A DNA stretch of 64,000 nt, taken from Macrostomum hystrix (Eukaryota > Animalia > Platyhelminthes). Shown here one piece after another: positions 18,549 to 63,317 of the stretch. The stretch lies in assembly GCA_950097015.1 (NCBI GenBank), contig CATNEN010000025.1:2852001-2916000 (forward strand), given 5' to 3'. The translations under genes were made by a program, and so were the position numbers. The notes beneath the pieces were generated by a model. The model had not been told where the DNA came from and searched no databases. It saw only the letters and a list, made by a program, of their open reading frames with translations. The number at the start of each line of letters is the position of its first letter. The stretch's first letter is position 1.

Positions 18549-19165
18549 TTAAACGTTTTACCGAGTGTTCAAACATTTTACCGAGTGTTTAAACGTTTAC
18601 CAAGCGCTTAAACATTTTATCGAGTGTTTAAACATTTTACCAAGCGCTTAAGCATTTAACCGAGCGTTCAAACAATTTAGCAAGCGCTTAAGCATTTTAC
18701 CGAGTGTTTAAACATTTTACCGAGTGTTTAAACTTTTACCAAGCGCTTAAACATTTTACCAAGCGTTCAAACATTTTACCAAGCGTTCAAACATTTTACC
18801 AAGCGTTTAAACATTTTACCAAGCGTTTAAACATTTTACCAAGCGTTCAAACAGTTTACCAAGCGTTCAAACAGTTTACCAAGCGTTCAAACAGTTTACC
18901 AAGCGTTCAAACAGTTTACCAAGCGTTCAAACAGTTTACCAAGCGTTCAAACAGTTTACCTAGCGTTCAAGCAGTTTACCTAGCGTTCAAACAGTTTACC
19001 AAGCGTTCAAACAGTTTACCAAGCGTTTAAACAGTTTACCAAGCGTTCAAACAGTTTACCTAGCGTTCAAGCAGTTTACCTAGCGTTCAAACATTTTACC
19101 TAGCGTTCAAACAGTTTACCTAGCGTTTAAACATTTTACCAAGCGTTCAAACATTTTACCAAGCA
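18549..19165. repeat. 20-bp satellite (AAGCGTTCAAACA(T/G)TTTACC), about 31 copies; left flank of the Helitron chain
   Basis: Visible tandem repeat with a sequence gradient. Confidence 0.95.
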
Positions 19166-20084
19166 TCCAACTATACTAAATCTCTAAAGTCTGTCTGTCT
19201 GTCTGTCTGTGGAATTTCGATACACAGGCTAAATGCCTCAACCAAATTTGATCGCGTTTTTTGCTAAACATGCCAAATTTTACTGGCATGAGACCTTGAA
19301 AATTTCGTTAGTCTGCTTCAATGCTAACAATATTAAATATTCGAAAAACGAGTTTTCCTATTGCTTTCAATAGGAGGCCAAACAAGGTTAAATTAGAATA
19401 GGGCCGGACACTGTCAGCTTTATTAGATTGCATCGGTGCTTTTTCTCGCCCGCGCGTGCATTGGTATAGCACTGAACAGGGCCCGATACTCTCAATTGAA
19501 TAGGATTGCGTCACTGCTTTTCGACCCGTACGTACGTTTATAAATTTGTCTCTTGGCTGATCGAGTGATTTGATTTAAATACGCAAACCGTACATAGCAG
19601 ATTTCATGATTGGGCTTTTATGATGCTCAATGCTAGCGAGACCTCTCCTCCTCCTTTCTATCCATAAAACTGCAGCCTTTCTATTGTCAAACCTTGTCTC
19701 GACTTCGATCATTGTGCCGCTTTCTTTTCATCTAGCTCCGAAGTAAAGTACTTTAATGCTATTGTAGAATGCAGGTAGAATTTCAGCATCGGTTTTGTTA
19801 CTGCTTCTTTTTCTTCTAATCTTCTAAACATCAGCAGTTAAAAACGTAAGTTCCTGTTTATTAGTATTTTTTGGGCATTTTTGGGTTCGAGTATAAATAC
19901 GAGTAAGTAAGTAAGCGATTTTGGTTAGCTACTGTCGAAGCAGATATTTGTTAGCTTTATTATTCCTGTACTCGCTTTCAGAAAATAGTATTCGTTTTCG
20001 AGTAAAGCAGCAAGTTTTATTCGATAATAAAACTTAGGAAATATTTTTTGTGCATAGCTGCAGGCGCTATCACAATTGAGCTTA

Positions 20085-20285
20085 AATCATGGCTAAACCA
20101 GAGTCTGAATCATGGCTAAATTTACGTTTGAATCATGGCAAAACCAGAGTTTGAATAATGGCTAAACAAGAGTTTGAATCATGGCTAAACCAGCGTTTGA
20201 ATCATGGCCAACCAGCGTCTGAATCATGGCTAAACCAGAGTTTATATCATGGCTAAACCAGAGTTTGAATCAAAGATAAACCAGA
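20085..20285. repeat. 23-bp satellite (AATCATGGCTAAACCAGAGTYTG), about 9 copies
   Basis: Same monomer as 58257-62748. Confidence 0.9.
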
Positions 20286-20950
20286 ACTGGGGGATAATCG
20301 TCAACTGTGGGATAATTGTAAACTGGGGAATCATCATCAAATGGGGATCATGGTCAACTGGGAGATCATTGTCAACTGGGTGATCATCATCAACTGGGGG
20401 ATCATTGTCAACTAGGGGGTAATAGCCAACTGGGGTAACATTGTCAACTGGGGATCATCATCAATGGGGGATCATAGTCAACTGGGAGATAATTGTCAAC
20501 TGGGTGATCATCATCAACTGGGGGATCATTGTAACCTGGGGGATCAATGTCAACTGGGGGATCATTGTCAACTGGGTGATTATCTTCAACTGGTGGATCA
20601 TTGTCAACTGTGGGATCATTGTCAACTGGGGGATCATTGTCAACTGGTGGATCATTATCAACTGGGGGATCATTGTCAACTGTGGGATCATTGTCAACTT
20701 GGGGAACATTGTCAACTGGGGGATCATCATCAACTGGGGGATCATTGTCAACTGGGGAATCATTGTCGACTGGGGGACCATTGTCAACTGGGGGATCATT
20801 GTCCCAGATCATTGTCAACTGGGGGATCATTGTCAACTGGGGGATCATTGTCAACTGGGGGATCATCATCAACTGGGAATCATTGTCGACTGAGGGACCA
20901 TTGTCAACCGGGGGATCATTATCAACTGGGGGATCATTGTCAACTGATCA
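20286..20950. repeat. 18-bp satellite (ACTGGGGGATCATTGTCA), about 37 copies
   Basis: Tandem repeat; same monomer as 62755-63135. Confidence 0.95.
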
Positions 20951-21048
20951 TTGTAGCGTAAAAAAGGCTAAAAATACAGCTGCTAAAAAGTGTATACTGG
21001 ACGAATTAAAAATATTTCTGCTCCCCGAAGGGGGGCAAAACTTGCTAG

Positions 21049-21071
21049 TCTAATATACTAAAAATGAAAAT

Positions 21072-21104
<33 letters not shown>

Positions 21105-22142
21105 CTTCTATTATATCTTATATACTAAAAATGAAAATCTTGCTTGCTTGCTTGCTTGTTTGCAATCGACTAGCTCCCGAACGGCTCAACCGATTTTCGC
21201 AATTCCTTCGCTAAAAGATCACAATTGGTCCCGAATCGGTACACGTATTTTTATTAAGCTTAATTTCATTGCCAAGGGGATTAAATATTCGAAAAACAGT
21301 TTTAAATAGGCTTTTCTAATGCATTCTTGTTTTCAGCTTGTGCACAGTGAGGCTCCAGTGCCAATTTTAATGATTGCATCAGAGCCAGTTTTGATAACGA
21401 ACTGATAAGAACTCACAGGGAGGCTACCCAGAGGGTAGCGAAGGCAGCTAGTCTAATATACTAAAAATGAAAATCTTGCTTGCTTGTTTGCAATCGACTA
21501 GCTCCCGAACGGCTCAACCGATTTTCACAATTCCTTCACCAAAAGATCACAAATGGGCCGGAATCGGTACACGTATTTTTATTAAGCTTAATTCCATTGC
21601 CAAGGGGATTAAATATTCGAAAAACAGTTTTAAATAGGCTTTTCTAATGCATTCTTGTTTTCAGCTTGTGCACAGTGAGGCTCCAGTGCCAACTTTAATG
21701 ATTGCATCAGAGCCAGTTTTGATAACGAACTGATAAGAACTCCAGTGAGGCTACCCAGAGGGTAGCGAAGGCAGCTAGTCTAATATACTAAAAATGAAAA
21801 TCTTGCTTGTATGTTTGTTTGCAATCGACTAGCTCCCGAACGGCTCAACCGATTTTCAAAATTCCTTCGCCAAAAGATCACAAATGGGCCGGAATCGGTA
21901 CACGTAATTTTATTAAGCTTAATTCCATTGCCAAGGGGATTAAATATTCGAAAAACTGTTTTAAATAGGCTTTTCTAATGCATTCTTGTTTTCAGCTTGT
22001 GCACAGTGAGGCCTCCAGTGCCAATTTTAATGATTGCATCAGAGCCAGTTTTGATAACGCACGCGCGTACTGATAAGAACTCACAGGGAGGCTACCCAGA
22101 GGGTAGCGAAGGCAGCTAGTCTAATATACTAAAAATGAAAAT

Positions 22143-22175
<33 letters not shown>

Positions 22176-22885
22176 CTTCTATTATATCTATCTTCTTTTA
22201 ATATACTAAAAATGAAAATCTTGCTTGTTTGCAATCGACTAGCTCCCGAACGGCTCAACCGATTTTCGCAATTCCTTCGCCAAAAGATCACAATTGGTCC
22301 CGAATCGGTACACGTATTTTTATTAAGCTTAATTTCATTGCTAAGGGGATTAAATATTCGAAAAACTGTTTTAAATAGGCTTTTCTAATGCATTCTTGTT
22401 TTCAGCTTGTGCACAGTGAGGCCTCCAGTGCCAAATTTAATGATTGCATCAGAGCCAGTTTTGATAACGCACGCGCGTACTGATAAGAACTCACAGGGAG
22501 GCTACCCAGAGGGTAGCGAAGGCAGCTAGTCTTCTTATATACTAAAAATGAAAATCTTGCTTGCTTGCTTGCTTGCTTGTATGTTTGCAATCGACTAGCT
22601 CCCGAACGGCTCAACCGATTATCGCAATTCCTTCGCTAAAAGATCACAATTGGTCCCGAATCGGTACACGTATTTTTATTAAGCTTAATTCCATTGCCAA
22701 GGGGATTAAATATTCAAAAAACTGTTTTAAATAGGCTTTTCTAATGCATTCTTGTTTTCAGCTTGTGCACAGTGAGGCCTCCAGTGCCAAATTTAATGAT
22801 TGCATCAGAGCCAGTTTTGATAACGCACGCGCGTACTGATAAGAACTCACAGGGAGGCTACCCAGAGGGTAGCGAAGGCAGCTAG
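21049..22885 (+). mobile_element. Units 2-6: five tandem mini-Helitrons (327-410 bp; 5' type A, 3' type a)
   Basis: Each begins TC(TTC)T(A/T)ATATACTAAAAATGAAAATC, then (TGCT)n and CGGCTCAACCGATT, and ends GCTACCC-AGA-GGGTAGC-gaaggcag-CTAG. Confidence 0.92.
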
Positions 22886-23472
22886 TCTTCTAATATACTA
22901 AAAATGAAAATCTTGCTTGTATGTTTGCAATCGACTAGCTCCCGAACGGCTCAACCGATTTTCAAAATTCCTTCACTAAAAGATCGCAATTGGGCTGGAA
23001 TCGGTACACGTATTTTTATTAAGCTTAATTCCATTGCCAAGGGGATTAAATATTCGAAAAACAGTTTTAAATAGGCTTTTCTAATGCATTCTTGTTTTCA
23101 GCTTGTGCACAGTGAGGCTCCAGTGCCAATTTTAATGATTGCATCAGGGCCAGTTTTGTTAGGCGAGCGTACTGATAAGAAATTTCTCACCCAAATGTGC
23201 ATAGCTGTGTCAACCCCACTGGCAAGATAATTATGCCCAATGTGCACAGGCTGAGCTGGCTTCTGTTAACTGCTGGCAGTGTGATATTTTATTATTTTAT
23301 TTATTTATTTATTGAGTTTTTGCAATCAAATAGCATATTCACATCATACACCAAAAGGCTACAGCTGAGAACTGAATTGATCCAAGTGATCGGCCTTTTT
23401 CTAGCAGAGCGAAGCGAACCGAACCGAATCCCAGGCACAACAATGACACAGCCAAATAGCATAAATACAAAT

Positions 23473-24030
23473 CCAGGCTCAGAATCGATAGATATCTAGG
23501 CTGAGCATTGATAGATATCTAGGCTGAGCATTGATAGATATCTAGGCTGAGCATTGATAGATATCTAGGCTCAGCATTGATAGACATCTAGGCTCAACAT
23601 TTTTATAGATATCTAGGCTCAACATTTTATAGATATCTAGGCTCAGCATTGATAGTTATCTAGGCTCAGTATTGAAAGATATCTAGGCTCAACATTTTTT
23701 ATAGATATCTAGGCTCAACATTTTTATAGATATCTAGGCTCAGCATTGATAGTTATCGAGGCTCAGAATCGATAGAAATCTAGGCTTAGCATTGATAGTT
23801 ATCGAGGCTCAGAATCGATAGAAATCTAGGCTCAGAATCGATACATATCTAAGCTCAGAATCAATTGAAATCAAGGCTCAGAATACACGTATAGATGTCT
23901 AAGCTCAGAATTGAAAGATATCTAAGCCCAGAAGCGATTGAAATCTAGGCTGGGAATCGATGGGTATCTAGGCACAGAATCGATTGAAATCTAGGCTCAG
24001 AAATTAGAATTGATAGATACATAGGCTCCG
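23473..24030. repeat. About 23-bp satellite (CTAGGCTCAG(C/A)AT(T/C)GATAGATAT)
   Basis: About 22 degenerate copies; a decayed trace also occurs at 42630-42720. Confidence 0.9.
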
Positions 24031-24632
24031 AATTTGTAAATATACAATGATATTTATTTAAGACAATAATGACTGATTCGAAAGCACAGCACTGTCAGAT
24101 TTCAAGGCACAACAGTGACATACAAGTTTCATCAAGACTCAAGACTATCATCGTGTGGTAATCGGTCAGTGGACGCATTTTTTCACATCAATTTAGAGTT
24201 GAGAAGTTTATTAGAGACGTGAAAGGCCTTTGAGATAACTTAGACGCTATCATATTGAAATTTGGGCGCACTGGCCTACCCAAGCCAAGTCCTTACCGGC
24301 TATTCTAGGCTGGCGCAGGCAATGTACATTATTTCCCCTCTTGCCCCCAAATGTGCACGCACGGGCTGGAGAGCCCTCACCCCATTCCATCGGTTTTTAA
24401 GATTTCAAGCGGTCAGAGGTCCGTTTTATCGATTTTTACCCTAGGTCTTAAGATAATATCCGATTCAGCCCACTGTGATGATATATAGCTTGCAAATTAG
24501 TGTGGTTTATAAAGGCTCCTTATCTGATTCTTCAGACATCGAAATTCAAATCCAAATTCACAACCTATCTCTCTTTCAAGCCTTTCATTATCTCTCAACT
24601 TATCATTTCATTTCACTTTTCAGTTCTCAATC

Positions 24633-27600
24633 ATGGTTCGACGCGGCGCAAGCAGTTTGAAGAAAAGTCGCGATGCCAAGCGACGGCGACAAGCTGAATC
24701 CGAGGCCGATCGCGAGGTCCGTTTGGAAGAACGACGTCAGCGAATGGCTGAGAAGCGAGCCTCTCAAACTGAGGCAGAGCGAGCTGCCCGACTGGAGGAA
24801 CAGCGGCAGCGGATCGCTGAGCGCAGAGATGTCGAGACTGAGGCAGAGCGAGCTGCCCGACTGGAGGAACAGCGGCAGCGGGATGCTCAGCGCAGAGATG
24901 CTGAGACTGAGGCAGAGCGAGCTGCCCGACTGGAGGAACAGCGGCAGCGGGATGCTCAGCGCAGAGATGCTGAGACTGAGGCAGAGCGAGCTGCCCGACT
25001 GGAAGCCGAGCAGATTCGTCGCCGTGGAGCTTTGGTTTCCAAGTGAGTTTTATGAGGCTCTATAAAATAACGTTACATAACATAATTATGGTTTTATTTA
25101 GTTTTTTTCTAAATCGCCTCATAAGTGTTGATTTTTTTGCTGTAGATTTGAGTAACTTAACCTGCAGTCCAACAATTGGTTTAAAAATTCTGTAAATGCA
25201 GCTGTGCTTTATTTTCACTGCATTGCCAACTTAGGTCGGACACCCAGCAGCAAGGTATGGAAGCTATTGTACCATTTGAGCAGTTGCAGGTAATCCCTAT
25301 TATTGGTGATGGCAATTGCTTCTTTTATGCTGTGTGTGATCAGCTGCGTGGAACCCCGCTAGAAACTGACGCAGCCTCCTTGCGGCAGGATTTGTCTTGC
25401 CGTGTTGCAGAACTCATGCCACAGTTGGTTGCAGATGGCCTCATCGCACCTGAGAGTGCTGATGACATTGTGAGTTCCTCTTTTCAAACAGGCACTTATG
25501 TTTCAGACGAAGTTGCCTCTTTGTTGAGCCGCTGCTTTAATGTGGACCTGGTCATTTACCAGGCCAATGGTAATGTGATGCAGTATTTCAGGGCTAATCT
25601 CTATCCTCCTAATGCGATTGTGCGCGTGCTCTTGCGCCATGAGCATTACGAGTCACTGAGACTTCGAGAGCCTTTGCAAGCCCTTTCAGATGCAGAGTTT
25701 CCAAGCTTGGCAGCAAGCAAAACTCCTGCCAAGAGGGCCAAGAAAGCCAAGGGCCCGAGAGCGATGCCAGCTGACAGCCCCAGCTCATGTGCTGACACTG
25801 GAGCACAGGCTGAGCAGATGTGAGTAACTTGCTTTTGTTATTTTGCATTTATTCGTTTAAATCAGCTTAATCTGCTGACACAAATAAATCACTAGCATGG
25901 AAAGCAATGTCAATCAAATCAATGTACCCTCTTAATAAACTCGGCTCAACCCCTACTCAAACCCTGCTCACAGGCATGCCGAGCCGGTGATGCCAGAAGC
26001 CCCGGCTCACCAATGCGGCCCAATGAACCGCGCCTGCAATGACTGCGGCGCCCTGCTGTGGGCCAAGGAGACGAGCAATTTCTGCTGCGCCAAGGGCAAG
26101 GTGAAGCTGCCCACCCGTTCCATGCCGCAGGTCCTGGCAGATCTGTACACGGGGCAGCACCGCCTCAGTGCAGAGTTCCTGGCTAACATCAGGAGCTACA
26201 ACTCTGTGCTGCACCTGACATCTCTGGGTGCGAGGCTCAGACTGGTGCCTGGCTGGAGTCCCAGCTTCATCATCAGCGGCCAGCTGCATCACAACATGGG
26301 GCCGCTGCTTGCCGACACCTCAGCCGTGCCGCATGGCTGGCAGGTGTACTTCACGGACCGCGAGCTGGAGAGCCGCCTGAGCCTCAGCCAGAAGGTGAAG
26401 CCGGAGCTGCTGGAGCTGCTGCAAACTGTGCTGCACGAGTGCAACGGCTATGTGCAGAGCCTGCGAGCTGCTGCTCAGCGGATCAGTGGCGACCCTGAGC
26501 TGGGAGATGCGCGAATTGTGATTCACCCGGACCGACGACCAGCTGGGGAGCACATTCGGTGAGTGAGCTGTGTTATGGAGCTGCTGGTTGGGATCCTATT
26601 TCGCCTGCACTTATACTGTTCAGTCTGTGCAGTTGATTCTGTGAAGTACCTGCTGTACCAATTCCATTCCTGTTCATTCCCAGGCGTTACAATCTCCCTA
26701 CTGCCAATGAGGTTGGCATCCTGGTTGTCGGTGGTTCCGAGGACGCACCGACAAGCCGTGACGTTGTGATTCGACTGCGCGGAGGCGAAGTCCAGCGCAT
26801 ATCCGAGACCCACCGGTCCTACGACCCTCTGGAGTACGTGCTGCTGTTCCCGAATGGCGAGGACGGCTGGCACCCAGAGCTGCAGATGGCGAATGGGCGG
26901 AAGCTGACGCCCATGAAGTACTACGCCAGCGAAATCATGGTGCGAGCTGGCCAGTTCAACGTGCTGCACCACGGCAGGCGCCTCTTCCAGCAGTACCTGG
27001 TAGACATGGCTGCCAAGATCGAGTCCGAGAGGCTGCTGTACCTGCGCACTCATCAGAACGACCTGCGCAGCGAGACCTACAGCGGCCTGCGAGACGCTCT
27101 GTTCGCTGCTGATGGCAGGAGCACCGAGAGAGACCCCAATGAGATTGGTAAGCCTGCCCATGTGTACCTGTCTTCCAGCTTTGTAGGTGGACCCAGGTAC
27201 CTGATGGAGCGGCTGCAAGATGCAATGGCCTACGTGCACAAGTTCGGCAAGCCGGACCTGTTTGTCACAGCCACGTGCAACCCGAAGTGGCCGGAAATCA
27301 GCGTGCAGCTGCTGCCCGGTCAGCGGGCAGAGGACCGCCCGGACATTGTGACTCGAGTCTTTGAACTGAAGAAAAAGGCTCTGCTTGAAGTGCTCAGGAA
27401 GCGTTTTGGCAAGGAGGCTGCGCATGTGTGCTCCTTGGAGTACCAGAAGCGCGGTGAGTAAAATCAGATTTTCATGCAGACATTGGCAATATTAACAGCC
27501 TGGAATAACGAGTCCGCATGCTTTTATCAACTCGCCTCAGGCCTTCCCCATGTGCACTTCCTGCTCTGGCTGGCGAACGGGAGTCGAGTCACCCCGGATC

Positions 27601-30600
27601 GCTACGATGCCATCGTGTCTGCGGAGATCCCAGACCCACAGCGGCAGCCAGTGCTGCACGAGCTGGTCAAGACCCACATGATCCACGGGCCGTGTGGCGA
27701 GCTGAACCCGGCCTGCCCTTGCATGGAGAACGGCAAGTGCAGCAAGAGCTTCCCGAAGGACTTCCAGCCGGTGACGCTGACGAGCGACAGCGGCTATCCG
27801 TTCTACAGGAGGCGCTCCCCTGAGATGGGAGGCTTTACGGTGGACAAACTGTTCAAGGGTCGCAGCATCCAAATGGACAACAGGTGAGTCAGTAGCTGCG
27901 TGGCCATAGCATTTCTGTGCTCTGCAAGCCGCTGCTTCCCTCCAATCACCAGGTGGGTGGTGCCATACAACCCTGACCTGCTGCTACAGTTCGCGTGCCA
28001 TTTGAACGTAGAGGTTTGTGCCACTGTCAAGTCTGTCAAGTACGTGATCAAGTACTTGATGAAGAATGGCGACATGGCGGTTTTCAAAGTCGCCGCCGCC
28101 GCAGGAGCTGCTGAAGCTCAGCCGAGTGCTCAATCTGAGCAGCCGGAGAAGCCCCGTGATGAAATCTCCGAGTACCTGTCTGCACGCTACATTGGTCCGA
28201 TGGAAGCTGTTAACACCATCTTGGCCTTTGAGGTAATTGCTCTGCTCTGCTTTCATTGCCTGTGCTTTTAGTACTGCATTACGTTTTTTTCAGCAGCTCT
28301 GATGCTCAAAAAATATCCTCACCTTTGCCCAGGTGCACAACAGGTTCCCAGCGGTCATCCGACTCTGTGTGCACAAGTCGGAAGAGCAGCTCGTGTACTT
28401 CAACGAGCAGACCGCGGGCGCCAGAGCAAAGGCGCCACGAGACTCGACACTGACGGCCTTCTTCAAGCTGTGCCGCACTGACGAGTTCGCCCGCCTGCTA
28501 CTCTACACAGAGGTGCCCACCTTCTTCGTGTGGCACCCGAGTGCGAGAGAGTGGCGTCGAGCCAAGCAGGGCGTCGATGTCGAAGGACATCCCGGCGTGA
28601 AGCGCAACACCAACATTGCGCGGATGTACACGGTCAGTCCTAGAGCTGGTGACCTGTTCTACCTGCGGCTGTTGCTGCTGCACGTGCGAGGACCGACCAG
28701 CTTCGAGTCGCTGCAGACCGTGGCCGGCGTGCATTGTGCCAGCGCCAAGGCCGCCTGCATGGCTCTCGGCCTGCTGCAGCGTGATGATCACTGGCATCGC
28801 TGCATGACTGAGGCTGTCCAGAGCCGAATGCCGCGAGCTCTGAGGCACCTGCTGGCTGTCGTTCTCATCTGGGGCGAGCCAGACGACGGCGCTGATCTGT
28901 GGAGCAGGTTTGCAGAGGATCTCTGCGAAGACCTGCGCTTCCACCAACCGGACTTAAGCGCCGAGGAAGTCAGCGACCTGGCTCTGCGGGAGCTGCAGAG
29001 CATGCTGACGTCAATGGGCGGCCGCAGTCTGCAAGAGTACGGACTGCCTGCTGCCTCTGCAATGCCGCAAGTCGGGCCGCTGCAGTTTGACACGGTCGAA
29101 CAGGCGGAGATCACCGAGATGCGGCTGCCAATGCTCACGGCCGAGCAGATGGCCATCTACGAGGCTGTGACTGTGGATCTTGTCGCTGGCTCGGGCGGCC
29201 TGCATTTCATTGACGCTCCGGCAGGCACTGGCAAGACCTTCCTGCTGGAGGTTTTGCTGGCGTTTGTGCGGAGTCGAGGGGAAGTCGCCCTGGCTGTTGC
29301 GTCGTCGGGAATCGCAGCCACCCTGCTGCCAGGCGGGCAGACGGCGCATTCAACGTGCGTTTTTTAATGGAAATCAAATTCACACTTAATGTTCTCCTGC
29401 TCATTCAGTCTCAATCTACATTTTTCGCCAGATTCAAGATCCCAGTGCGGCTGGTTCGCTCTGACAAGGACGTGTGTTCTGTCCGAGCGCAGTCTAAGCT
29501 GGCCGCAGTCTTTCGCACTGTACGGCTGATCGTCTGGGACGAGATCTCCATGACAAACCGGAAGGACCTGGAGGCTGTCGACCGCAGTCTGCGAGACCTG
29601 CGGAAGCAGGACTGCCCGTTCGGCGGAATCGTCGTGGTCTGCGCTGGAGACTTTCGCCAGCTGCTGCCGGTGGTGAAAAATGGCACGCGCGCTAACAACA
29701 TCCTGGCGTGTGTTAGCAAGTCCCCGCTGTGGTCTTTGTTCCGGAGGCACCGCCTATCCAAGAACATCCGGCTGCAGAGCTGTGCTGATGCTGAGCTGTA
29801 CCATCGCTATATGCAGCTGCTCATGCAGGTAAGCTTTGTTCTTGCTGTTTTTAGATAACCTCACAGGCTGCAGTTCTCGTGCATTTACCTGCCAACCCCA
29901 CACAGATCGGCTCTGGGGTAGCCGATCAGTCAGACGACACGGTCTGCCTTCCTGCCAAGATCATCATTCCGACGGAGGCACCGCTGTCCGAGCTGATCCA
30001 GTTCGTGTACCCTTCGTTCGAGGCGTCAGCGGAGCGCGACGGCTACTTTGCCAGCCGAGCCATTCTGGCGCCCTACAACGATGCGGTTGACGCGATCAAC
30101 AACGAGTGCCTGGCCATGTTCCCAGGCCAACTGCGCGAGTATCGCTCAGTGGACAGCGTGGCTGACGAGGAAGCGGCCACGCACTTTCCTCCGGAGCTGC
30201 TGAATCAGCTGGATGCTCCGAACTTCCCTGCTCACCTGCTGAAGCTCAAGGTGGGCATGCCGCTGGTTCTGCTGCGGAATCTGAATCCGCCACGGCTGTG
30301 CAACGGCACCCGGCTGATCATCCTGGAGCTGGGCGAGAATGTGCTGCGCTGCAAAGTCGCTGCCGGCCAGTTCACTGGAGATGAGATCCTGCTGCCGCGG
30401 ATTCCACTGGAGCCCAACAATGCTGACCTGCCAGTCTGCTTCAAGCGGCTGCAGTTCCCAGTCAAGCCGAGCTTCTGCCTGACGATCCACAAGTCGCAGG
30501 GCCAGTCGCTCGACACCGTGGGCATCGACCTAGCTGTCGGCTGCTTCGCCCACGGCCAGCTGTACACGGCGCTGTCCCGGGCCAAGAATGTCGACAGCGT

Positions 30601-30664
30601 GCGCGTCCGGATCTCCGGTGAGCGGACGAGAAATGTCGTGTACCCTGAGGTGCTGAGTGACTGA
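24633..30664 (+). CDS. Helitron Rep/helicase 1: STPR-like repeats, OTU domain, HUH Rep and PIF1 helicase; 9 exons, 1716 aa, apparently intact
   Basis: Exons 24633-25042, 25235-25819, 25974-26558, 26684-27453, 27541-27883, 27953-28232, 28333-29354, 29432-29828 and 29906-30664, all GT-AG and phase-consistent (5151 nt). Motifs: GDGNCFF...HEHY (OTU), FVTATCNPKW, GLPHVHFLLW (HUH), KYVIKYLMK (Y2), DAPAGTGKT, IVWDEISM, GDFRQLLPV, TIHKSQGQS, HGQLYTALSR. Confidence 0.93.
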
Positions 30665-32580: not shown

Positions 32581-32717
32581 CAGCACCAAATAAGTCTTTA
32601 TTTGGACAATGAACTCTCTAGCTTTGTATCTCAAATGACAAAAGAGAATAAATTAAAATATTGTCGCAAGCTAATAAATAATATTAATATATTATTATTG
32701 ATCGTTTATTATTAATA

Positions 32718-34835: not shown

Positions 34836-34866
34836 GTACTGCTGCTCCTGCTGCTGCTACTGCCGT

Positions 34867-51800: not shown

Positions 51801-54776
51801 GCGCCATCAAGTACGTGGTGAAGTACATCACCAAGGGTAGCGATGTGGCAGCATACCAGATCCGACAAGAGACGGCTGCTGCGAATGCCAGCGCAGATTC
51901 GGCCACTGAAAGACCACCGGCTGCTCCGCAGGCGAGTCGAGACGCCGCCAGTCCGTCCACGCAGGCCGAAATGTCGGCTGGGACTGCTGCAAAGCCTGCA
52001 GCTTCGCGCAAGATGATCGACGAGATCAAGGACTACCTTCTGGGCAGGTACATCGGTCCAATGGAGGCAGTCAATACCATCTTGGGCTTCGAAGTGCACA
52101 GCCGATACCCGCCTGTGATCAGACTCGCCGTCCATCTTAAGGACGAACAGCGGGTCTTTTTCACCAGTGAGACGATTCAAGCTGTTGCTGCTCGGCCCAA
52201 GGCGACGACTCTGACCGCCTTTTTTGATGTAAGTTTGCAAAAATTGTATTTGCTAATAATACGTCTAATTTTGCAAATTAACGCTAGAATGCTCCTGTTT
52301 TTACTCTCCCAGCTCTGTCGACAAGACGAAGTCGCCCGTGGCCTGCTGTACCAGGAGGTGCCCCGGCACTTCACCTGGGACCACAGCGCGCGCCAGTGGC
52401 ATCGCGCAGGTCGCGGCCGAGTTACTGTTGATCAGCCAGCTGGTGTTCTAACGACCGGCAACATTGGCCGCATCTACACGGTGAGCCCTCGGATGGGCGA
52501 CTGCTTCTACTTGCGCCTGCTGCTGGTGAACGTGCGCGGCCCGACGTCGTTCGAGGCGCTGCGCACTGTGGACGGCGTTCTGCTGCCGACCTTCAAGGCC
52601 GCTTGCCAGGCTCGCGGGCTGCTGGAAGACGACAGGCACTGGCAGCTGTGCATGCGCGAAGCTGCGGAGACGCGGTTGCCAGCGGCTCTACGTCGCCTTT
52701 TTGCCGCTATTCTCACCCACGGTGACCCCAGTGACCCGGCAAAGCTGTGGCAGGAATTCTCCAGCGAGATGTCTGGCGATCTGCTGCACCAGGGCTACAG
52801 CCCTGAGGATGCCGAGGCCAATGTACTGCGGGAGCTACAGCACGGGCTGGAGTCCATGGGAGGATCTGAGCTGTCTGTCTACGGCCTCCCTGCACCACAG
52901 GCGCAGCCGGATCAAGTAAGTAAATAGATTACCATAGACAATTTATAGACAGACTGCCAAAGTAGTTTTGTCTGCAAGTTTCAAAAGCTTCCTTTAATTT
53001 GCAGGGTCGACTTCCCTCTGACTGCCTACCGACGCCGCAAGAAGCCGCTGAGCTCCAGTCTGAAGTGGAGGCACTGAGCACATCATTGACTGATGAGCAG
53101 CGATCTGTTTTCGAGGCCGTGCAGTCTAATCTGGCAGCTGGCGGCGGCGGCTTGCACTTTGTGGACGCTCCTGGCGGTACTGGCAAGACGTTTTTGCTCA
53201 CGCTTCTGCTGAAGTCTGTTCGAGCGAGGCGTCAGATCGCTATTGCAGTAGCTTCATCGGGCATCGCGGCCACCATACTTCCTGGGGGACGGACCGCCCA
53301 CTCCATGTGAGTGCTGCTTCTGTTTTAAATATTTATTCTGCGCATACATGTTACGTCCGCAGACTATACCGTCAAGACACGGAAAAAATAAAATAGTTCC
53401 TTTTTAAACCATTCTTTTGTGAAACATTACGTGCGAAATCTTTCTTTCTATGCATTGATCAATCGTTCCGCTACACCCAACCCATGATCTCATCTCAGGT
53501 TCAAGATCCCTGTCTGCGCAGTACGGCAGGACAACGCCTTCTGTTCTATTGGCAAGCGGAGTAAGCTGGCGGAGCTGCTGCGGAATGCGCGGCTGATCGT
53601 TTGGGACGAGGCGCCGATGACGCACCGCAAAGACCTCGAGATCGTCGAGAGGACTCTGCGGGATCTCTTGCACGTCGAGCAGCCTTTCGGAGGGGCGCTG
53701 TTGGTGCTGGCTGGCGACTTTCGCCAGCTGCTGGCTGTTGTGCCCGGAGGGACGCAGGCCAATACGATCGAGGCCTGTTTGAACCGGTCGGTTTTGTGGC
53801 CGCACTTCCGTCAGCACCAGCTAACAAGAAACCTGCGGCTCGAGGGTGGCTCAGCTGCCCAGGGTTACGCAGATTTCCTTATGCAGGTCAGAAATTTTAC
53901 TTTCATGTTCCTTGATTAATGAAAAGAGAATCGTACCTTTTTTTGCAAAAAATTGTACTTTATTACTTGCTTTTTGTCTCATGAATTACTACATTTTGCC
54001 CTCAGGTTGGCAACGGAGAGCTGCTAGAGGACGAAGAGGGCATGGTGTCCTTGCCTAGCGAGATCATCCTGCCCGATGACACAACCACTGAGCAGCTCAT
54101 CCAGCACGTCTACCCGTCCTTTGAGCCGAACGTCGAACGTGATTTGATGTTCGCGGAGCGGAGCATCCTAGCGCCACTCAACAGGACCGTGGACGAGGTC
54201 AACGCCGCCTGCTTGGCGCTCTTCCCCGGTGCGAGTCGGGTCTACCTGTCTGTCGACTCGATTCCGCATGATGATACGGCAGCGACCAACTTTCCACCGG
54301 AGCTGCTAAACCGGCTGGATCCCAATGGCCTGCCATTGCACCGGCTGGAGCTCAAGGTCGGCATGCCGGTGATGATGATGCGCAATCTGGACCCGCCGCT
54401 GCTGTGCAATGGGACCCGGCTGCTGCTGCGCGAACTGCATGACAATGTCCTGCTGGCGGAGGTTGCCACCGGTGTCTACCGCACCCGGCAGGTATTCATC
54501 CCGCGGATCCCACAGGAGCCGAGTCCGAGCGAGCTGCCCTTCACCTTCCGCCGCCTGCAGTTCCCGATCCGGCCGTGCTTCGCCATGACCATCCACAAGA
54601 GCCAGGGCCAGTCGCTGGGCACATACGCTGTCGACCTGACGACAGCTTGCTTTCAGCACGGCCAGCTTTACGTGGCTCTGAGTCGTGCGCGGAGTGCCGA
54701 TGGCGTGAAAGTTCGAGCTCCAGGCGGACGGACGCAGAATATTGTGCTGCGGCAGCTTATCGGCAAGCATAACTGA
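48895..54776 (+). CDS. Helitron Rep/helicase 2 (STPR-like repeats, Rep, PIF1; no OTU); 9 exons, about 1600 aa, one frameshift near 50384
   Basis: Exons 48895-49442, 49606-49723, 49873-50447, 50614-51252 (GC donor), 51369-52228, 52313-52915, 53005-53306, 53499-53886 and 54006-54776. Phases are consistent if 1 bp is removed from exon 3. Motifs: FLTMTCNPKW, GLPHVHALLW, KYVVKYITK, DAPGGTGKT, IVWDEAPM, TIHKSQGQS, HGQLYVALSR. Confidence 0.9.
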
Positions 54777-55269
54777 TTAACTCTATGTTTTGCATGTTCG
54801 ATGTATGCATGGTTAGCTGAAAAAATACTGAACTATTCAGAGCGAATATCTGTGAAAAAACTGCTAAGTGTGCTAGAATTCAATGTGGACCCTCTACTGC
54901 AATTGGCTGCAATTAGCCGTCAATGTAAATCCGATGTAATCCGAGAACCGAAAACTAAAGAGGAGAGAGACAGGCCTCTTTCCTTATTAGAGAAAGTAAA
55001 AGATAATTTTTTGACAACTGAATAAACTGTTAGGGTTGGTGACATAAATTATGAGTGAGGGAAATGACACGGTAAAAATTATAATTAAGGCGTTGACAAG
55101 AATACTAACGACTGAATAAAATACTATATCAATTCTTTGTAAAATCTATGTACAGCTCTCCGCCTGAATTTCTTAGATATATTGAATTATGCCGCTTTAT
55201 ATGACTCACTGTTCTTCACATGTCTGCTGAATTTAGAGCTAAAAATAAATATACCCCATAGTGTACTCA

Positions 55270-55431
55270 GGGTGCGCAGAATACAGAAAAAAGACGCGAT
55301 TCGATAGGAACAAACAGACAAAAATACAAGGACAAAACAGTATATCGAATTTAAAAATTTTTAATAAACTCTTAATTCCCGAATGATTTGCTTAAATCCC
55401 GAATTTGTTTGACTTCGTATTCTGCGCACCC
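55270..55431. repeat. 162-bp segment with perfect 15-bp inverted ends (possible MITE)
   Basis: GGGTGCGCAGAATAC ... GTATTCTGCGCACCC; no clear TSD. Confidence 0.5.
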
Positions 55432-55763
55432 GCAAATGATGTCTTCGATTTCGTTATTTCAATTCAACAGCGGCTAAGGACTCCAACTGCCAGTTCTGTG
55501 TCTGGAATAAACAATATTAAAGGTCGCAGAATTCCACAAGCATTTTTGAGTTTAACGGTATAGTTCAAAAGTGCTAGGAGTTTGATCCCCTCAACTTCAT
55601 CCACTGAGAAGGAATGGAAGGAAAGTGTGAAATTCTGAGGGATTACACAAGTCGAGGGCTCTAAGGGGAAATGTGAAATTCGCATTGTTAGAGTTTGGCA
55701 GATGGAATTCACGCGCAAGGACTTTGATCCCCTCAACCTCCTCCGGAGGAGGAGTTTAGCTCG

Positions 55764-55786
55764 TAAATATACTAAAATTCACGTGT

Positions 55787-55821
<35 letters not shown>

Positions 55822-57662
55822 TGGTTATCTCCTCCTAGAATACTGACAAGTCAACTTTGAAACTTATATGGGAAAATGGGAAATTTTCCTGGTCAGGCTA
55901 TAGGCTATTTTAATTCTGAAATTTCAAATTCTATGATCCTCAAAAAAGCAGAAAGGCTATTAAGTAGTATATAGTAGGCAAATGTCCTTCCCGCTGTGAT
56001 GAAATTGGCCTCGGTTAAATGAGTTGCGTCAACACATTGTGCCTATCTGTTTAGTGTATTTTCTCTCCAGTGGAGGGTTAGCAGTCGGTTTGAAAAAAAA
56101 TGGGGCGGAGAGGTGGCCGTACGCACATTCTAACTGTCCCTGTGTATTGGCAGATAGAGGGTGCCGCGAGTTATTTCTATTGAGGGGTCTGATTTGTTCA
56201 AAATTGAAGTGCGTACAATGGGCAGGGCAGAGTTGGCTGAGTTAAAATTCAATTTATAAAATTTGCGGGCCTCTCAGTGTAGGCGGAGAAGAATGTGCTT
56301 ACTAAACTGGCTGCCCTTTGCAGAAATTTCAACTGAGAATTATTATTTTGCTTTTTTAAGATTTGTGGATAAAATTTGTACTGCTGGAGAGAACTTGAAG
56401 TTCTAAATCCAGAGATATAAATTTCATTGCTGAATTCCGAAAATTGGGGATGCCAAGGGCAAATAAAGTTTTTATACTTTTGCAATGCTTTCAGCTGAGT
56501 GTACAGTGTCTCGGCGAGATTGCTAAGGAGAGAGAATTCGCCACAATACAGTTTCACACATTCCTATTCTCGAAGGCGGGCTGTTGAATTTTATTTATTG
56601 AAATTCGCACCTCTGACTGAGCGGGGCCCGGAGAACTGGCTGTCGTCAATATTAATGGCTCGGACTTCACCTGTTTTAACGGGTGGGGTTTAATTTAAAG
56701 TTGATGGAGTTCGCGCGATATGATTTCTAGCCCCTCAATCTTATCCGAAAGTTGTCGTCTATTTTAATTCTGAAGATTCTGGGCATGGTAGCTAAAGAAA
56801 AATTGGTCAATTTTGAATTGTTTTCAACAGTTTAGTCGGACAAAAGGCGGTTAACGCACATTGCTACTTTCAGACATCATTGGGTGAGGAGTTTTTGGTT
56901 AGATGAGGCGATGGGAGATGTGGCGACGGGAGATAAGGCAATGGGAGTTTAGGCGATGAGAGATGAGGCGATGGGAGATGAGGGGATGGGAGATCAGGCG
57001 ATGGGAGATGTGGCGACGGGAGATGAGGTGATGGGTGATCAGGTGAAGGGAGATGAGGCGATGGGAGATGAGGCGATGGGAGATGAGGCGATGGGAGATC
57101 AGGCGATGGGAGATGAGGCGATGGGAGATGAGGCGATGGGAGATTAGGCGATGGGAGATCAGGCGATAGGAGATGAGGCGATGGGAGATGAGACGATGGG
57201 AGATGATGCGATGAGAGATTAGGCGATGGGAGATGAGGTGATGGGTGATCAGGTGATGGAAGATGAGGCGATGGGAGATGAGGCGATGGGAGATGAAGCG
57301 ATGGGAGATGAGGCGATGGGAGATGAGGCGATGGGAGATCAGGCGATGGGAGATCAGGCGATGGGAGATCAGGCGATGGGAGATGAGGCGATGGGAGATG
57401 AGGCGATGGGAGATTAGGCGATGGGAGATCAGGCGACGGGAGATGAGGCGATGGGAGATCAGGCGATGGGAGATCAGGCGATGGGAGATGAGGCGATGGG
57501 AGATGAGGCAATGAGAGATGAGGCGATGGGAGATGAGGCGATGGGAGATGAGGCGACGGGAGATGAGGCGATGGGAGATCAGGCGATGCGAGATTTGGCG
57601 ACGGGAGATGAGGCAATGGGAGTTCTCTCCCCTAACTTCCTCCGGAGGAGGAATTCCGCTCG
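55764..57662 (+). mobile_element. Unit 14: non-autonomous Helitron, type C
   Basis: Near-copy of unit 12; the 3' end is slightly diverged (cttcctccggaggaggaattccgCTCG). Confidence 0.85.
56901..57621. repeat. 15-bp satellite, about 48 copies
   Basis: Tandem repeat. Confidence 0.95.
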
Positions 57663-58256
57663 TACTATACTAAAAATGAAATGCTTGCTTGGTTGGTTGT
57701 AATTGATTTTCTCCCGAACGGCTCAACCGATTTTCACCATTTCTTCACCAAAAGATGCCAAATATGGGGACAATTATACACGTATTTTTATTAAGCTTAA
57801 CTTTATTGCTAAAGGGATTAAATATTCGAAAAACATGATTTTTCAAAGGTCAAACATCTTGGCCTATTGAGAATTTTACTCACTGCCACTGAATTGAAAT
57901 TGCATCGTCAAATTGCGCAACAACCCCTAGCTGATTGAATTTAAAGCCTGCACTCTGGAGACAAATTGGAAATAAATGTACACAACCAACCGCGACACAA
58001 AGTGTACTCTATTTTCTTACTTCATTGTACAAAGCCAGAACTTTAAGAATTCATTTTATAAGGCTGATTTTTGCACCCACTAACCAACAGTCGGAATAGC
58101 CGATGTGTAGGCACTAGGAATAGGTTAGGCTAGGCTAGGGTTCGATTCTGCACTGCGTCAAATCATTTAGACTAATTTTCAGCCAGTAGTGTTTGAAGAC
58201 TATTTTAATTTATTTTTTTCATTTCGTAAATAAAATATCATAAATCATAGCACACC

Positions 58257-61200
58257 GGCTAAAACAGAGTTTGAATCATGGCTAAACCAGAGTCTGAATC
58301 ATGGCTAAACCAGAGTCTGAATCATGGCTAAACCAGAGTCTGAATCATGGCTAAACCAGAGTCTGAATCATGGCTAAACCAGAGTCTGAATCATGGCTAC
58401 ACCAGAGTCTGAATCATGGCTAAACCAGAGTCTGAATCATGGCTAAACCAGAGTCTGAATCATGGCTAAACCAGAGTCTGAATCAAGGCTAAACCAGAGT
58501 CTGGATCATGGCTAAACCAGAGTCTGAATCATGGCTAAACCAGAGTCTGAATCATGGCTAAACCAGAGTCTGAATCATGGCTACACCAGAGTCTGAATCA
58601 TGGCTAAACCAGAGTTTGAATCATAGCTAAACCAGAGTCTGAATCATGGCTAAACCAGAGTCTGAATCATTGCTACACCAGAGTCTGAATCATGGCTCAT
58701 AGCTAAACCAGAGTCTGAATCATGGCTAAACCAGAGTCTGAATCATGGCTACACCAGAGTCTGAATCATGGCTAAACCAGAGTCTGAATCATGGCTAAAC
58801 CAGAGTCTGAATCATGGCAAAACTGGAGTCTGAATCATGGCTAAACCAGAGTTTGAATCATGCCTAAACCAGAGTCTGAATCATGGCTAAACCAGAGTCT
58901 GAATCATGGCTAAACCAGAATTTGAATCATAGCTAAACCAGCGTCTTAATCATGGCTAAACTAGAGTCTGAATCATGGCTACACCAGAGTCTGAAACATG
59001 GCAAAACCAGAGTTTGAATCATGGCTAAACCAGATCTTGAATCATGGCTAAACCAGATCTTGAATCATGGCTAAACCAGAGTTTGAATCATAGCTAAACC
59101 AGAGTCTGAATCATGGCTAAACCAGAGTCTGAATCATTGCTACACCAGAGTCTGAATCATGGCTCATAGCTAAACCAGAGTCTGAATCATGGCTAAACCA
59201 GAGTCTGAATCATGGCTACACCAGAGTCTGAATCATGGCTAAACCAGAGTCTGAATCATGGCTAAACCAGAGTCTGAATCATGGCAAAACTGGAGTCTGA
59301 ATCATGGCTAAACCAGAGTTTGAATCATGCCTAAACCAGAGTCTGAATCATGGCTAAACCAGAGTCTGAATCATGGCTAAACCAGAATTTGAATCATAGC
59401 TAAACCAGCGTCTTAATCATGGCTAAACTAGAGTCTGAATCATGGCTACACCAGAGTCTGAAACATGGCAAAACCAGAGTTTGAATCATGGCTAAACCAG
59501 ATCTTGAATCATGGCTAAACCAGATCTTGAATCATGGCTAAACCAGAGTCTGAATCATGGCTAAACCAGCGTCTGAATCAAGGCTAAACCAGAGTCTGAA
59601 TCATGGCTAAACCAGAGTCTGAATCATGGCTAAACCAGAGTCTGAATCATTGCTACACCAGAATTTGAATCATAGCTAAACCAGTGTCTTAATCATGGCT
59701 AAACTAGATTCTGAATCATGGCTAAACCAGAGTCTGAATCATGGCTAAACCAGAGTTTGAATCATGGCTAAACCAGAGTCTGAATCATGGCTAAACCAGA
59801 GTCTGAATCATGGCTACACCAGAGTCTGAATCATGGCTAAACCAGAGTCTGAATCAAGGCTAAACCAGAGTCTGAATCATGGCTAAACCAGAGTCTGAAT
59901 CATGGCTAAACCAGAGTCTGAATCATGGCTAAACCAGAGTCTGAATCAAGGCTAAACCAGAGTCTGGATCATGGCTAAACCAGAGTCTGAATCATGGCTT
60001 AACCAGAGTCTGAATCATGGCTAAACCAGAGTCTGAATCATGGCTACACCAGAGTCTGAATCATGGCTAAACCAGAGTTTGAATCATAGCTAAACCAGAG
60101 TCTGAATCATGGCTAAACCAGAGTCTGAATCATTGCTACACCAGAGTCTGAATCATGGCTCATAGCTAAACCAGAGTCTGAATCATGGCTAAACCAGAGT
60201 CTGAATCATGGCTACACCAGAGTCTTAATCATGGCTAAACCAGAGTCTGAATCATGGCTAAACCAGAGTCTGAATCATGGCAAAACTGGAGTCTGAATCA
60301 TGGCTAAACCAGAGTCTGAATCATTGCTACACCAGAGTCTGAATCATGGCTCATAGCTAAACCAGAGTCTGAATCATGGCTAAACCAGAGTCTGAATCAT
60401 GGCTACACCAGAGTCTGAATCATGGCTAAACCAGAGTTTGAATCATAGCTAAACCAGAGTCTGAATCATGGCTAAACCAGAGTCTAAATCATTGCTACAC
60501 CAGAGTCTGAATCATGGCTCATAGCTAAACCAGAGTCTGAATCATGGCTAAACCAGAGTCTGAATCATGGCTACACCAGAGTCTGAATCATGGCTAAACC
60601 AGAGTTTGAATCATAGCTAAACCAGAGTCTGAATCATGGCTAAACCAGAGTCTGAATCATTGCTACACCAGAGTCTGAATCATGGCTAAACCAGAGTCTG
60701 AATCATGGCTAAACCAGAGTCTGAATCATGGCTAAACCAGAGTCTGAATCATGGCAAAACTGGAGTCTGAATCATGGCTAAACCAGAGTTTGAATCATGC
60801 CTAAACCAGAGTCTGAATCATGGCTAAACCAGAGTCTGAATCATGGCTAAACCAGAATTTGAATCATAGCTAAACCAGCGTCTTAATCATGGCTAAACTA
60901 GAGTCTGAATCATGGCTACACCAGAGTCTGAAACATGGCAAAACCAGAGTTTGAATCATGGCTAAACCAGATCTTGAATCATGGCTAAACCAGATCTTGA
61001 ATCATGGCTAAACCAGAGTCTGAATCATGGCTAAACCAGCGTCTGAATCAAGGCTAAACCAGAGTCTGAATCATGGCTAAACCAGAGTCTGAATCATGGC
61101 TAAACCAGAGTTTGAATCATGGCTAAACCATCGTTTTAATCAAGGCAAAACCAGAGTTTGAATCATGGCTAAACCATCGTTTGAATCATGGCTAAACCAT

Positions 61201-62748
61201 CGTTTGAATCATGGCTAAACCATCGTTTAAATCATGGCTAAACCAGAGTTTGAATCATGGCAAAACCAGAGCTTGAATCATGGCTAAACCAGAGTCTGAA
61301 TCATGGCTAAACCAGATCTTGAATCATGGCTAAACAATTGTTTGAATCATGGCTAAACCATCGTTTGAATCATGGCTAAACCATCGTTTGAATCATGGCT
61401 AAACCAGAGTTTGAATCATGGCTAAACCATCGTTTGAATCATGGCTAAACCAGAGTTTGAATCATGGCTAAACCATCGTTTGAATCATGGCAAAACCAGA
61501 GTTTGAATCATGGCTAAACCATCGTTTGAATCATGGCTAAACCATCGTTTGAATCATGGCTAAACCATCGTTTGAAGCATGGCTAAACCATCGTTTGAAT
61601 CATGGCTAAACCATCGTTTAAATCATGGCTAAACCATCGTTTGAATCATGGCTAAACCAGAGTTTGAATCATGGCTAAACCAGAGTCTGAATCATGGCTA
61701 AACCATCGTTTGAATCATGGCTAAACCATCGTTTACATCATGGCTAAACCATCGTTTGAATCATGGCTAAACCATCGTTTGAATCATGGCTAAACCAGAG
61801 TTTGAATCATGGCTAAACCATCGTTTGAATCATGGCTAAACCATCGTTTGAATCATAGCTAAACCATCGTTTACATCATGGCTAAACCATCGTTTGAATC
61901 ATGTCTAAACCAGAGTTTGAATCATGGCTAAACCAGAGTTTGAATCATGGCTAAACCATCGTTTGAATCATGGCTAAACCATCGTTTAAATCATGGCTAA
62001 ACCATCGTTTGAATCATGGCTAAACCAGAGTTTGAATCATGGCTAAACCAGGGTCTGAATCATGGCTAAACCAGATCTTGAATCATGGCTAAACCATCGT
62101 TTGAATCATGGCTAAACCATCGTTTGAATCATGGCTAAACCATCGTTTGAATCATGGCTAAACCATCGTTTACATCATGGCTAAACCATCGTTTGAATCA
62201 TGGCTAAACCAGAGTTTGAATCATGGCTAAACCAGGGTCTGAATCATGGCTAAACCAGATCTTGAATCATGGCTAAACAATTGTTTGAATCATGGCTAAA
62301 CCAGAGTTTGAATCATGGCTAAACCATCGTTTGAATCATAGCTAAACCAGAGTTTGAATCATGGCAAAACCAGAGTTTGAATCATGGCTTAACCATCGTT
62401 TGAATCATGGCTAAACCATAGTTTGAATCATGGCTAAACCAGAGTTTGAATCATGGCAAAACCAGATCTTGAATCATGGCTAAACAATTGTTTGAATCAT
62501 GGCTAAACCATCGTTTGAATCATGGCTAAACCATCGTTTGAATCATGGCTAAACCATCGTTTGAATCATGGCTAAACCAGAGTTTGAATCATGGCTAAAC
62601 CAGAGTTTGAATCATGGCAAAACCATCGTTTGAATCATGGCTAAACCATCGTTTGAATCATGGCTAAACCAGAGTCTGAATCATGGCTAAACCAGCGTTT
62701 GAACCATGGCTAAACCAGAGTTTGAATCTTGGCTAACCCAGCGTTTGA
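58257..62748. repeat. 23-bp satellite (AATCATGGCTAAACCAGAGTCTG / ...CCATCGTTTG), roughly 195 copies
   Basis: 4.5-kb tandem array with internal higher-order duplication. Confidence 0.97.
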
Positions 62749-62754
62749 AAAATC

Positions 62755-63135
62755 AACGTCAACTGGGGAGTCATCATCAAAATGGGGATCATGGTAAACT
62801 GGGGGATAATCGTCAACTGGGGGATCGTGGTAAACTGGGGGATAATTGTCAACTGGGTGATCATTGTCAACTGGGGGGTCATTGTCAACTGGGGGATCAT
62901 TGTCAACTAGGGGGAAATGGTCAACTGGGGGATAATCGTCAACTGGGGGATCATTGTCAACTAGGGGGAAATGGTCAACTGGGGGATAATCGTCAACTGG
63001 GGGATCATGGTAAACTGGGGGATAATTGTCAACTGGGGGATCATTGTCAACTGGGGGATCATCATCAACTAGGGGATCATCATCAACTGGGGGATCATTG
63101 TCAACTGGGGGATCATTGTCAACTGGGGGTTCATT
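62755..63135. repeat. 18-bp satellite, about 21 copies
   Basis: Same monomer as 20286-20950. Confidence 0.93.
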
Positions 63136-63230
63136 GTAGCTATAAAAAGCTGTAAATTCAGCTGCTAAAAAGTATATACTAGACGAATTAAAAGTATTTC
63201 TGCTCCCCGAAGGGGGGCATAACTTGCTAG

Positions 63231-63317
63231 TCAAATGTTCTATTGAGCGTTCACGTGTTTTACAAAGGGTTTAAAAATTTACCAAGCGCTTAACGTTTTA
63301 CCTAGCGTTCAAACTTT
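63231..63317. repeat. Continuation of the 20-bp satellite on the right flank of the Helitron chain (about 4 degenerate units)
   Basis: gagcgttcacgtgttttaca, aagcgcttaacgttttacc and tagcgttcaaacttt match variants seen at 18549-19165. Confidence 0.8.

Follow-up and report, generated by a model that had tools for sequence, protein, structure and literature searches.

The DNA analysed here, which we call the window, is a 64,000-nucleotide stretch of the genome of the flatworm Macrostomum hystrix (GenBank assembly GCA_950097015.1, contig CATNEN010000025.1, positions 2,852,001 to 2,916,000 of the forward strand), and the feature of interest in it is a train of Helitron transposons set within a 20-bp satellite. 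Positions are those of the window, and a slash marks a joint between two sequences. We parsed the train by junction scans, direct reading, a head-motif scan and a hairpin-CTRR scan, and it resolves into a block of 44,065 bp made of 15 units, all on the + strand, with spacer limited to 0-3 ambiguous bases at the junctions. This reproduces the original prediction, made from the letters alone, of 15 same-strand units without spacer DNA.

The left part of the host satellite array lies at 18551..19165 (+), as delimited by Tandem Repeats Finder, the sequence itself and a cyclic alignment. Tandem Repeats Finder reports period 20 over 18551-19164, with 30.8 copies and 89% matches. The consensus of this left array is TCAAACATTTTACCAAGCGT; the array ends in ...AAGC-A, of which the final A is the target A, so that ...ccaagcA closes the left flank at 19165 and TCCAACTATACTAAA, the TC start of the first Helitron, begins at 19166. 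At the other end of the block, 63230 is the last base of the final hairpin-CTAG and is followed by Tcaaatgttctatt, whose first base is the target T. This T opens what is left of the same satellite on the right side, some 4.5 degenerate units at 63231..63320 (+) identified by cyclic alignment, sequence and contig depth, and beyond 63320 the DNA is single-copy (flat single-contig depth from 63273 onward). These edges are all where the original prediction placed them. In a wrap-around alignment to the cyclic satellite consensus, 63231-63320 scores 69, compared with -43 +/- 10 (maximum -8) for 500 shuffles and -17 to -50 for windows of unique flank, and the flanks are thus the same satellite and not two unrelated arrays.

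Along the consensus, index 18 is the last position of the left flank and index 0 the first of the right flank, and joining the two gives a unit of 19 bp. The prediction that the rejoined flanks would restore a near-normal monomer therefore holds for the satellite family and, within one base, for the phase, while the rejoined unit itself is one base short. Chance alone would give a phase match within +/-1 with a probability of about 0.15, so that this match is weak support by itself. No satellite unit with up to 4 mismatches was found on either strand inside the 44-kb block. Because the flanks are the same satellite, in phase within one base, and the interior of the block is free of it, the sequence supports the view that the block occupies a single host site, which lies near the right edge of the array; the presence of the same satellite on both sides and its absence from within are the stronger facts, and the phase is the weaker one. 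The outer flanks, A at 19165 and T at 63231 without a target-site duplication, are those of a canonical A/T insertion, as had been claimed. A T/T reading with a shared T is possible at this outer site, and it is not needed. We also considered the satellite as cargo of a larger Helitron and rejected this, as no head or terminus adjoins the array and, on the right side, contig depth shows single-copy DNA beyond 63320.

The train opens with unit 1 (19166-21048; junctions, repeats, self-BLAST), a non-autonomous Helitron of a type we call A, which begins with TC and continues with some 900 bp of 5′ sequence that occurs nowhere else in the window; it also contains a 23-bp array and an 18-bp array and closes with a hairpin and CTAG. 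It is followed by B-type mini-Helitrons, units 2 (21049-21451), 3 (21452-21778), 4 (21779-22119), 5 (22120-22529) and 6 (22530-22885), each with a TC(T) head and a 3′ end made of the hairpin GCTACCCAGAGGGTAGC and CTAG. Then comes unit 7 (22886-42811), a 19.9-kb autonomous Helitron, and on its far side lie further B mini-Helitrons, units 8 (42812-43150), 9 (43151-43493) and 10 (43494-43829), the last with a head that lacks TC. The B mini-Helitrons are 327-410 bp long. Units 11 (43830-45328) and 12 (45329-47683) are non-autonomous Helitrons of type C with a 15-bp array (AGATGAGGCGATGGG) and 3′ ends formed by the hairpin CCTCCTCCGGAGGAGG and AGTTTAGC(TCG), the boundary between them at 45328/45329 having a 3-nt ambiguity. 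Unit 13 (47684-55760) is a second autonomous Helitron with a C-type head and a C-type 3′ end, and unit 14 (55761-57659; repeats, self-BLAST, junctions) is again a non-autonomous C Helitron with a 15-bp array, closing in a hairpin and AATTCCGC(TCG). The last, unit 15 (57660-63230; repeats, self-BLAST, junctions), is a hybrid: its head is B-like (about 80% identity over 175 bp), it contains a 4.5-kb 23-bp array and an 18-bp array, and its tail is the same A-type hairpin and CTAG as in unit 1. Units 1 and 15 might be taken for two halves of a single element that was interrupted, and we rejected this, since each has complete ends of its own and their 5′ parts are unrelated. The train is thus made up of two autonomous RepHel elements, each amid its own short derivatives, plus satellite-carrying non-autonomous units. 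As a separate observation, the 18-bp repeat GTCAACTGGGGGATCATT (62758-63137 and 20285-20946) has, in the public run X1 introduced below, a summed contig depth tens of thousands of times that of the single-copy flank, and this repeat, carried by the A-type Helitron, is probably among the most abundant short repeats of the genome.

Unit 7 was assigned from Pfam matches, alignment, self-BLAST and its junctions. Its first 297 bp or so align with the B head, its 3′ end is a hairpin with CTAG, and the same 23-bp repeat family occurs near both of its ends, which supports reading it as one unit. A multi-exon RepHel gene lies at about 24633-30664, and a further open reading frame (ORF) at 36553-37107 (+) is an RPA-like OB match (REPA_OB_2, E 1e-06); RPA-like genes are best known from plant Helitrons. 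Unit 13, assigned from Pfam, protein comparison and self-BLAST, has a RepHel gene at about 48.9-54.8 kb and a head about 80% identical to the other C heads. Pfam finds Helitron_like_N in both long units (E 3.5e-47 and 5.9e-52) and Pif1_2B in both; the PIF1 domain was scored in unit 7, and the ORFs scanned in unit 13 left out the matching stretch. The predicted domains therefore include the Rep (HUH) and PIF1-type helicase of autonomous canonical Helitrons, and both RepHel elements are, judging from their sequence, apparently coding. Their RepHel proteins are 56-68% identical, and we conclude that units 7 and 13 represent different RepHel lineages. The head-motif and hairpin-CTRR scans found no further heads or strong hairpin-CTRR sites within units 7 and 13, and for this reason each was kept as a single unit. 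Self-BLAST also shows a 99% duplication inside unit 7, where 30675-32577 equals 37544-39442. The wider segment with 75-bp and 248-250-bp repeats is present twice (30675-32678 and 37544-41042) at about 99% identity, with 10.5 repeat units in the second copy versus 4.4 in the first, and it may be either a recent internal duplication or an assembly expansion.

The original prediction gave all units TC...hairpin-CTRR ends. On the 3′ side, 11 of the 15 units do close with a hairpin and CTAG. DNA folding gives stems of 7-8 bp that end 11-12 nt from the terminus where the fold resolves one stem, and all terminus types fold. The other four ends, those of the C-type units 11-14, have the hairpin and end in AGCTCG or CGCTCG (...GCTCG), a variant of CTAG and not CTRR; in full they read as the hairpin plus AGTTTAGCTCG or AATTCCGCTCG. 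Alignment to the B end (...AGCTAG) places the natural terminus of these ends at CTCG, which lies 11 nt beyond the hairpin. A cut at CTCG leaves the following heads (TAAATATAC, TACTATAC) without TC, and a cut 3 nt earlier gives heads that start with TCG, which is the 3-nt ambiguity of the parse at the four C-unit junctions. On the 5′ side, a clear TC directly follows the preceding terminus in 10 of the 15 heads, and the general description fails for the other five as it does for the four C-type ends. The five heads without a clear TC are that of unit 10 and those of units 12-15, which start with TCG or lack TC depending on the 3-nt parse choice.

The heads vary in other ways as well. The junction at 43493, where unit 10 begins, reads CTAG/TATATAC without TC, and that at 43829, at the head of unit 11, reads CTAG/T(TC)6TAAATATAC. 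Units 6, 7 and 8 begin with TCT+TC, that is, with an extra TCT. In units 2 and 5 a stuttered second head comes after an additional fragment of about 70-80 bp that consists of a head only; these Helitron fragments, each a TC head with (CTTG)8, lie at 21049-21115 and 22120-22196. All of the irregularities are confined to the 5′ side of the junctions, and the 3′ ends are constant. There are about eight distinct junction types (A/B, B/B, B/autonomous B, autonomous B/B, B/B without TC, B/C, C/C and C/hybrid), and the three C/C junctions are identical 32-mers. We tried a rule of TC conservation, in which spare TCs would equal the number of TC-less heads; the fit is approximate (18 for 15 units; 6 for the five-unit C run), and the rule is unusable as proof. 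Assignment to the Helentron/HEL2 group, with its T/T target, subterminal inverted repeats and endonuclease, was also rejected, as the termini are TC...CTAG with a hairpin at the 3′ end only; no endonuclease domain occurs among the Pfam matches of the ORFs tested.

The polarity of the train is uniform. All 19 head-motif matches inside the block (19/19) are on the + strand and the - strand gives no convincing match; for 15 units and 19 heads all pointing the same way P is about 6e-5 under random orientation.

Four public runs of one study (X1 to X4) contain the right flank, in each case as Logan contigs, which show presence and not absence. X1, in which 96% of words matched, is probably the source sample. 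It has a 99-letter contig over 63204-63302 with 0 differences from the window and a depth of 47.3, which crosses 63230/63231 with 27 letters on the Helitron side. X1 also has a second allele with an extra A behind 63272 (depth 27.1 of 74.4). X2 and X4 have the +A allele only, in contigs of 567 and 207 letters that match the window from exactly 63231 rightwards; the first 25 letters of these contigs disagree with the Helitron terminus. The minor X1 allele likewise departs from the window exactly at 63231. In a 31-mer graph simulation using the window's own satellite, ...AAGCGT before TCAAAT produces a break exactly 25 letters left of 63231, which an ...AAGCA/TCAAAT allele would not give. The satellite letters expected left of 63231 in an empty allele are ...ACCAAGCGT. 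From the break position and the overhang length, we infer that the alternative allele is probably the satellite abutting the flank, i.e., the empty site. If so, the filled and empty alleles differ by A versus GT at the left edge, as expected if the target unit was a 19-bp variant or if host and element have a T in common, and the block appears to be a segregating insertion that is hemizygous in the probable source sample and absent from X2 and X4. The claim that the block may be present or absent as a unit is thus supported indirectly, at its right junction, where these alleles break at 63231 with an overhang that fits the satellite. The flanks of the two haplotypes show 7 differences in 541 bp (1.3%). 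Separately, an X3 contig matches from 63488 onward only, preceded by 22 unmatched letters, and this may be a further structural difference in the flank.

The contigs also bear on whether the 44-kb structure is partly an artefact of assembly, with repeat-rich Helitron pieces of several loci chained together. The A-type 3′ end has a summed contig depth thousands of times that of the flank, unit 7 contains its 99% internal duplication, and independent support lies at the right outer junction only, all of which could be expected of such chaining. However, the X1 contig crosses that junction without a single difference, though with only 27 letters on the Helitron side, and the flanks agree in satellite family and phase, which is not expected of a random mis-join. 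We regard an artefact as very improbable.

The contigs hold other copies of the A-type 3′ end, seen as loose ends at 63231-63236. All are followed by T, and immediately behind CTAG+T they lead into unrelated DNA; since these independent copies part exactly there, the 3′ terminus is real. Several copies run on into B-type heads, and joints between an A-type 3′ end and a B head thus recur in the genome. These joints are among the observations that suit a train built, wholly or for the most part, elsewhere and brought into the satellite in one event, as if composites move together. In such an event RepHel would start at the 5′ end of unit 1, pass 14 internal terminators and stop at the last A-type 3′ end, or, equivalently, a mixed episomal concatemer would integrate once. 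End bypass is an established property of Helitrons (PMC5148889). The single host site with its clean outer A/.../T ends fits one entry, as does the coexistence of filled and probably empty alleles, a presence/absence polymorphism that favours one event. In addition, the B units differ by 2-6% compared with 1.3% between the haplotype flanks, which suggests that they diverged before arrival, but this argument carries little weight, as old copies inserted one by one would leave the same pattern. Bypass of 14 terminators over 44 kb would be extreme, there is no known donor copy, and the train would still need another process to build it. We therefore consider a single entry unlikely, roughly a one-in-four prospect.

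Relations among the units were read from their identities and from self-BLAST. The B units are 94-98% identical and fall into two interleaved subgroups. The closest B pairs (98.2-98.3%) sit on opposite sides of the 20-kb unit 7, so that nearest relatives are not neighbours, and no B pair exceeds 98.3%. This interleaving, with nearest relatives apart, argues against a simple local duplication of all B units. At a larger scale, units 2-4 resemble units 5-7 head, a higher-order similarity. A concatemer formed by rolling-circle replication of a single family was rejected: the joints are exact as such a concatemer requires, but there are at least four head/tail families and two RepHel lineages, and the feature of tandem copies of one element is valid only within the B and C runs.

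A broader version of local amplification would have few Helitron insertions, with most units derived from rolling-circle concatemers at integration and from later unequal crossing-over or gene conversion inside the block. Same-family units are clustered (11 of 14 adjacencies, P about 1e-4), the 32-mers at the C/C junctions are identical, and both the similarity of units 2-4 to units 5-7 head and the 99% duplication in unit 7 look like products of such exchange. Yet the exact heterologous joints (A/B, B/C, C/hybrid, autonomous/B) cannot arise in this way, and the interleaved B subgroups, whose closest members are separated and reach at most 98.3%, speak against it as well. As an account of most of the train we find it improbable.

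The reading that we put forward, with about even confidence, is that the train is a polarised, mixed-family stack of canonical A/T Helitrons at one site, grown mainly by end-directed integration, and that it is a segregating insertion. Integration at 5′ junctions is the simplest process to propose because the heterologous joints are exact, the orientation is uniform and there is one host site. The restriction of irregular sequence to the 5′ side of the joints speaks for it as well. In this proposal RepHel would cut a resident Helitron at its 5′ junction or a few bases within it. This junction would always present host-A/T(C), and RepHel would ligate an incoming single-stranded copy at the cut, so that the stack would grow without new host DNA. 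Some of the same-family runs would probably have been added by rolling-circle concatemers or unequal exchange. More tentatively, and as a possibility to which we give rather less than even weight, RepHel may prefer resident 5′ junctions even of another family, so that mixed trains stack at one A/T site. If this is true, stacking would be so rapid that a 44-kb block of 15 units forms on one haplotype with the empty allele still segregating, and the TC-less heads and TC pile-ups would be scars left where cleavage was slightly offset.

Several points weigh against stacking by end-directed integration. Same-family adjacencies number 11 of 14 where 5.6 are expected (P about 1e-4), and this clustering can be explained without homing since local duplication or concatemers suffice. 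The C/C junctions count as one event because their 32-mers are identical, the TC-less view of these junctions depends on aligning AGCTCG to AGCTAG, and a tally of 18 TCs for 15 units fits a model of landing behind a resident TC loosely. At the host site, the rejoined satellite unit is 1 bp short, and this means either an A/T insertion in a 19-bp variant unit or a T/T insertion with a shared T. The alternative allele is known only from its break point and overhang length, and contig support is limited to the right outer junction. Successive, independent insertions are an assumption of the model, and ready-made arrival, or a mix of insertion and local duplication, fits the data equally well. Thus, of the original prediction that the block grew at one site, the one site stands on the flanking satellite, its phase and the clean interior, and growth in place is one of several origins that fit.

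Other features noted in the window lie to the left of the train. A Gypsy-type long terminal repeat retrotransposon pol region at 3172-7148 (+) encodes protease, reverse transcriptase, RNase H and integrase in a 1085-amino-acid open frame plus an integrase-core ORF. A 307-amino-acid ORF at 831-1754 (-) has a tyrosine recombinase (Phage_integrase) domain and may be part of a Crypton or DIRS-like element. Methyltransf_22 domains occur in two ORFs in overlapping frames at 10493-11879 (+) and 11823-12172; behind these ORFs come tandem repeats of 59/121 bp and, at 12248-12526, a 16-bp array.

For tandem Helitrons, the papers cited as primary are Pritham & Feschotte 2007 and Xiong et al. 2016. Tandem head-to-tail Helitron arrays are described, in the portions of the literature available to us, from Myotis lucifugus, Drosophila, rice, maize, Arabidopsis centromeres and fungi (PMC5876387, PMC9248874, PMC5148889, PMC11934779, PMC12001565). 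As far as those accounts go, the present train shares with the published arrays the exactness of its 3′-to-5′ joints, a single orientation, series of short, truncated derivatives, and autonomous copies that lie in register. Unlike those arrays, which in the same accounts mostly consist of one family and are explained by rolling-circle replication, it has at least four head/tail families and two RepHel lineages, and it also differs from what they describe in that a satellite serves as a ruler for the host site and that there is evidence of an allele lacking the block.

The closest precedent for stacking is fungal. Helitrons of Fusarium and Metarhizium show self-insertion and multiple 5′ termini: copies are inserted into one another at the 5′ end or within a few bp of it, the first 70 nt or so are repeated, and three occur in tandem, and the origin of these tandems has been discussed as insertion at the 5′ end or as rolling-circle replication (PMC5148889). 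The head-only fragments and stuttered heads of the train resemble these multiple 5′ termini. The fungal elements, however, are non-canonical and the cases few and small (PMC5148889), whereas here the stack is 44 kb long and made of canonical TC...CTAG elements. Satellite-carrying non-autonomous Helitrons are known as Mothra in rice (PMC4683698) and Heli2Xen in Xenopus (PMC12001565). Like these, the train has non-autonomous elements filled with tandem repeats that share termini with an autonomous or RPA-encoding relative, unit 7 having the RPA-like OB ORF; Mothra and Heli2Xen are described as dispersed single copies, in contrast to a mixed train at one site. Helitron tandem arrays are thus already published and the idea of end targeting is already in the literature (PMC5148889), and the gain here is incremental. 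What this locus contributes is the mixed composition with two RepHel lineages, the satellite ruler for one site, and the read-based evidence for a block-less allele.

A mixed-family train cannot come from rolling-circle replication of one element, the process to which Helitron trains are usually ascribed. The locus makes the question of its origin testable, as it combines a satellite that serves as a base-pair ruler, two apparently coding RepHel elements, and a probable empty allele in the same population. It is therefore well suited to asking whether Helitrons stack on each other's 5′ ends or move as composite blocks, and the outcome matters for understanding how regions that are rich in Helitrons and resemble satellites arise in animal genomes.

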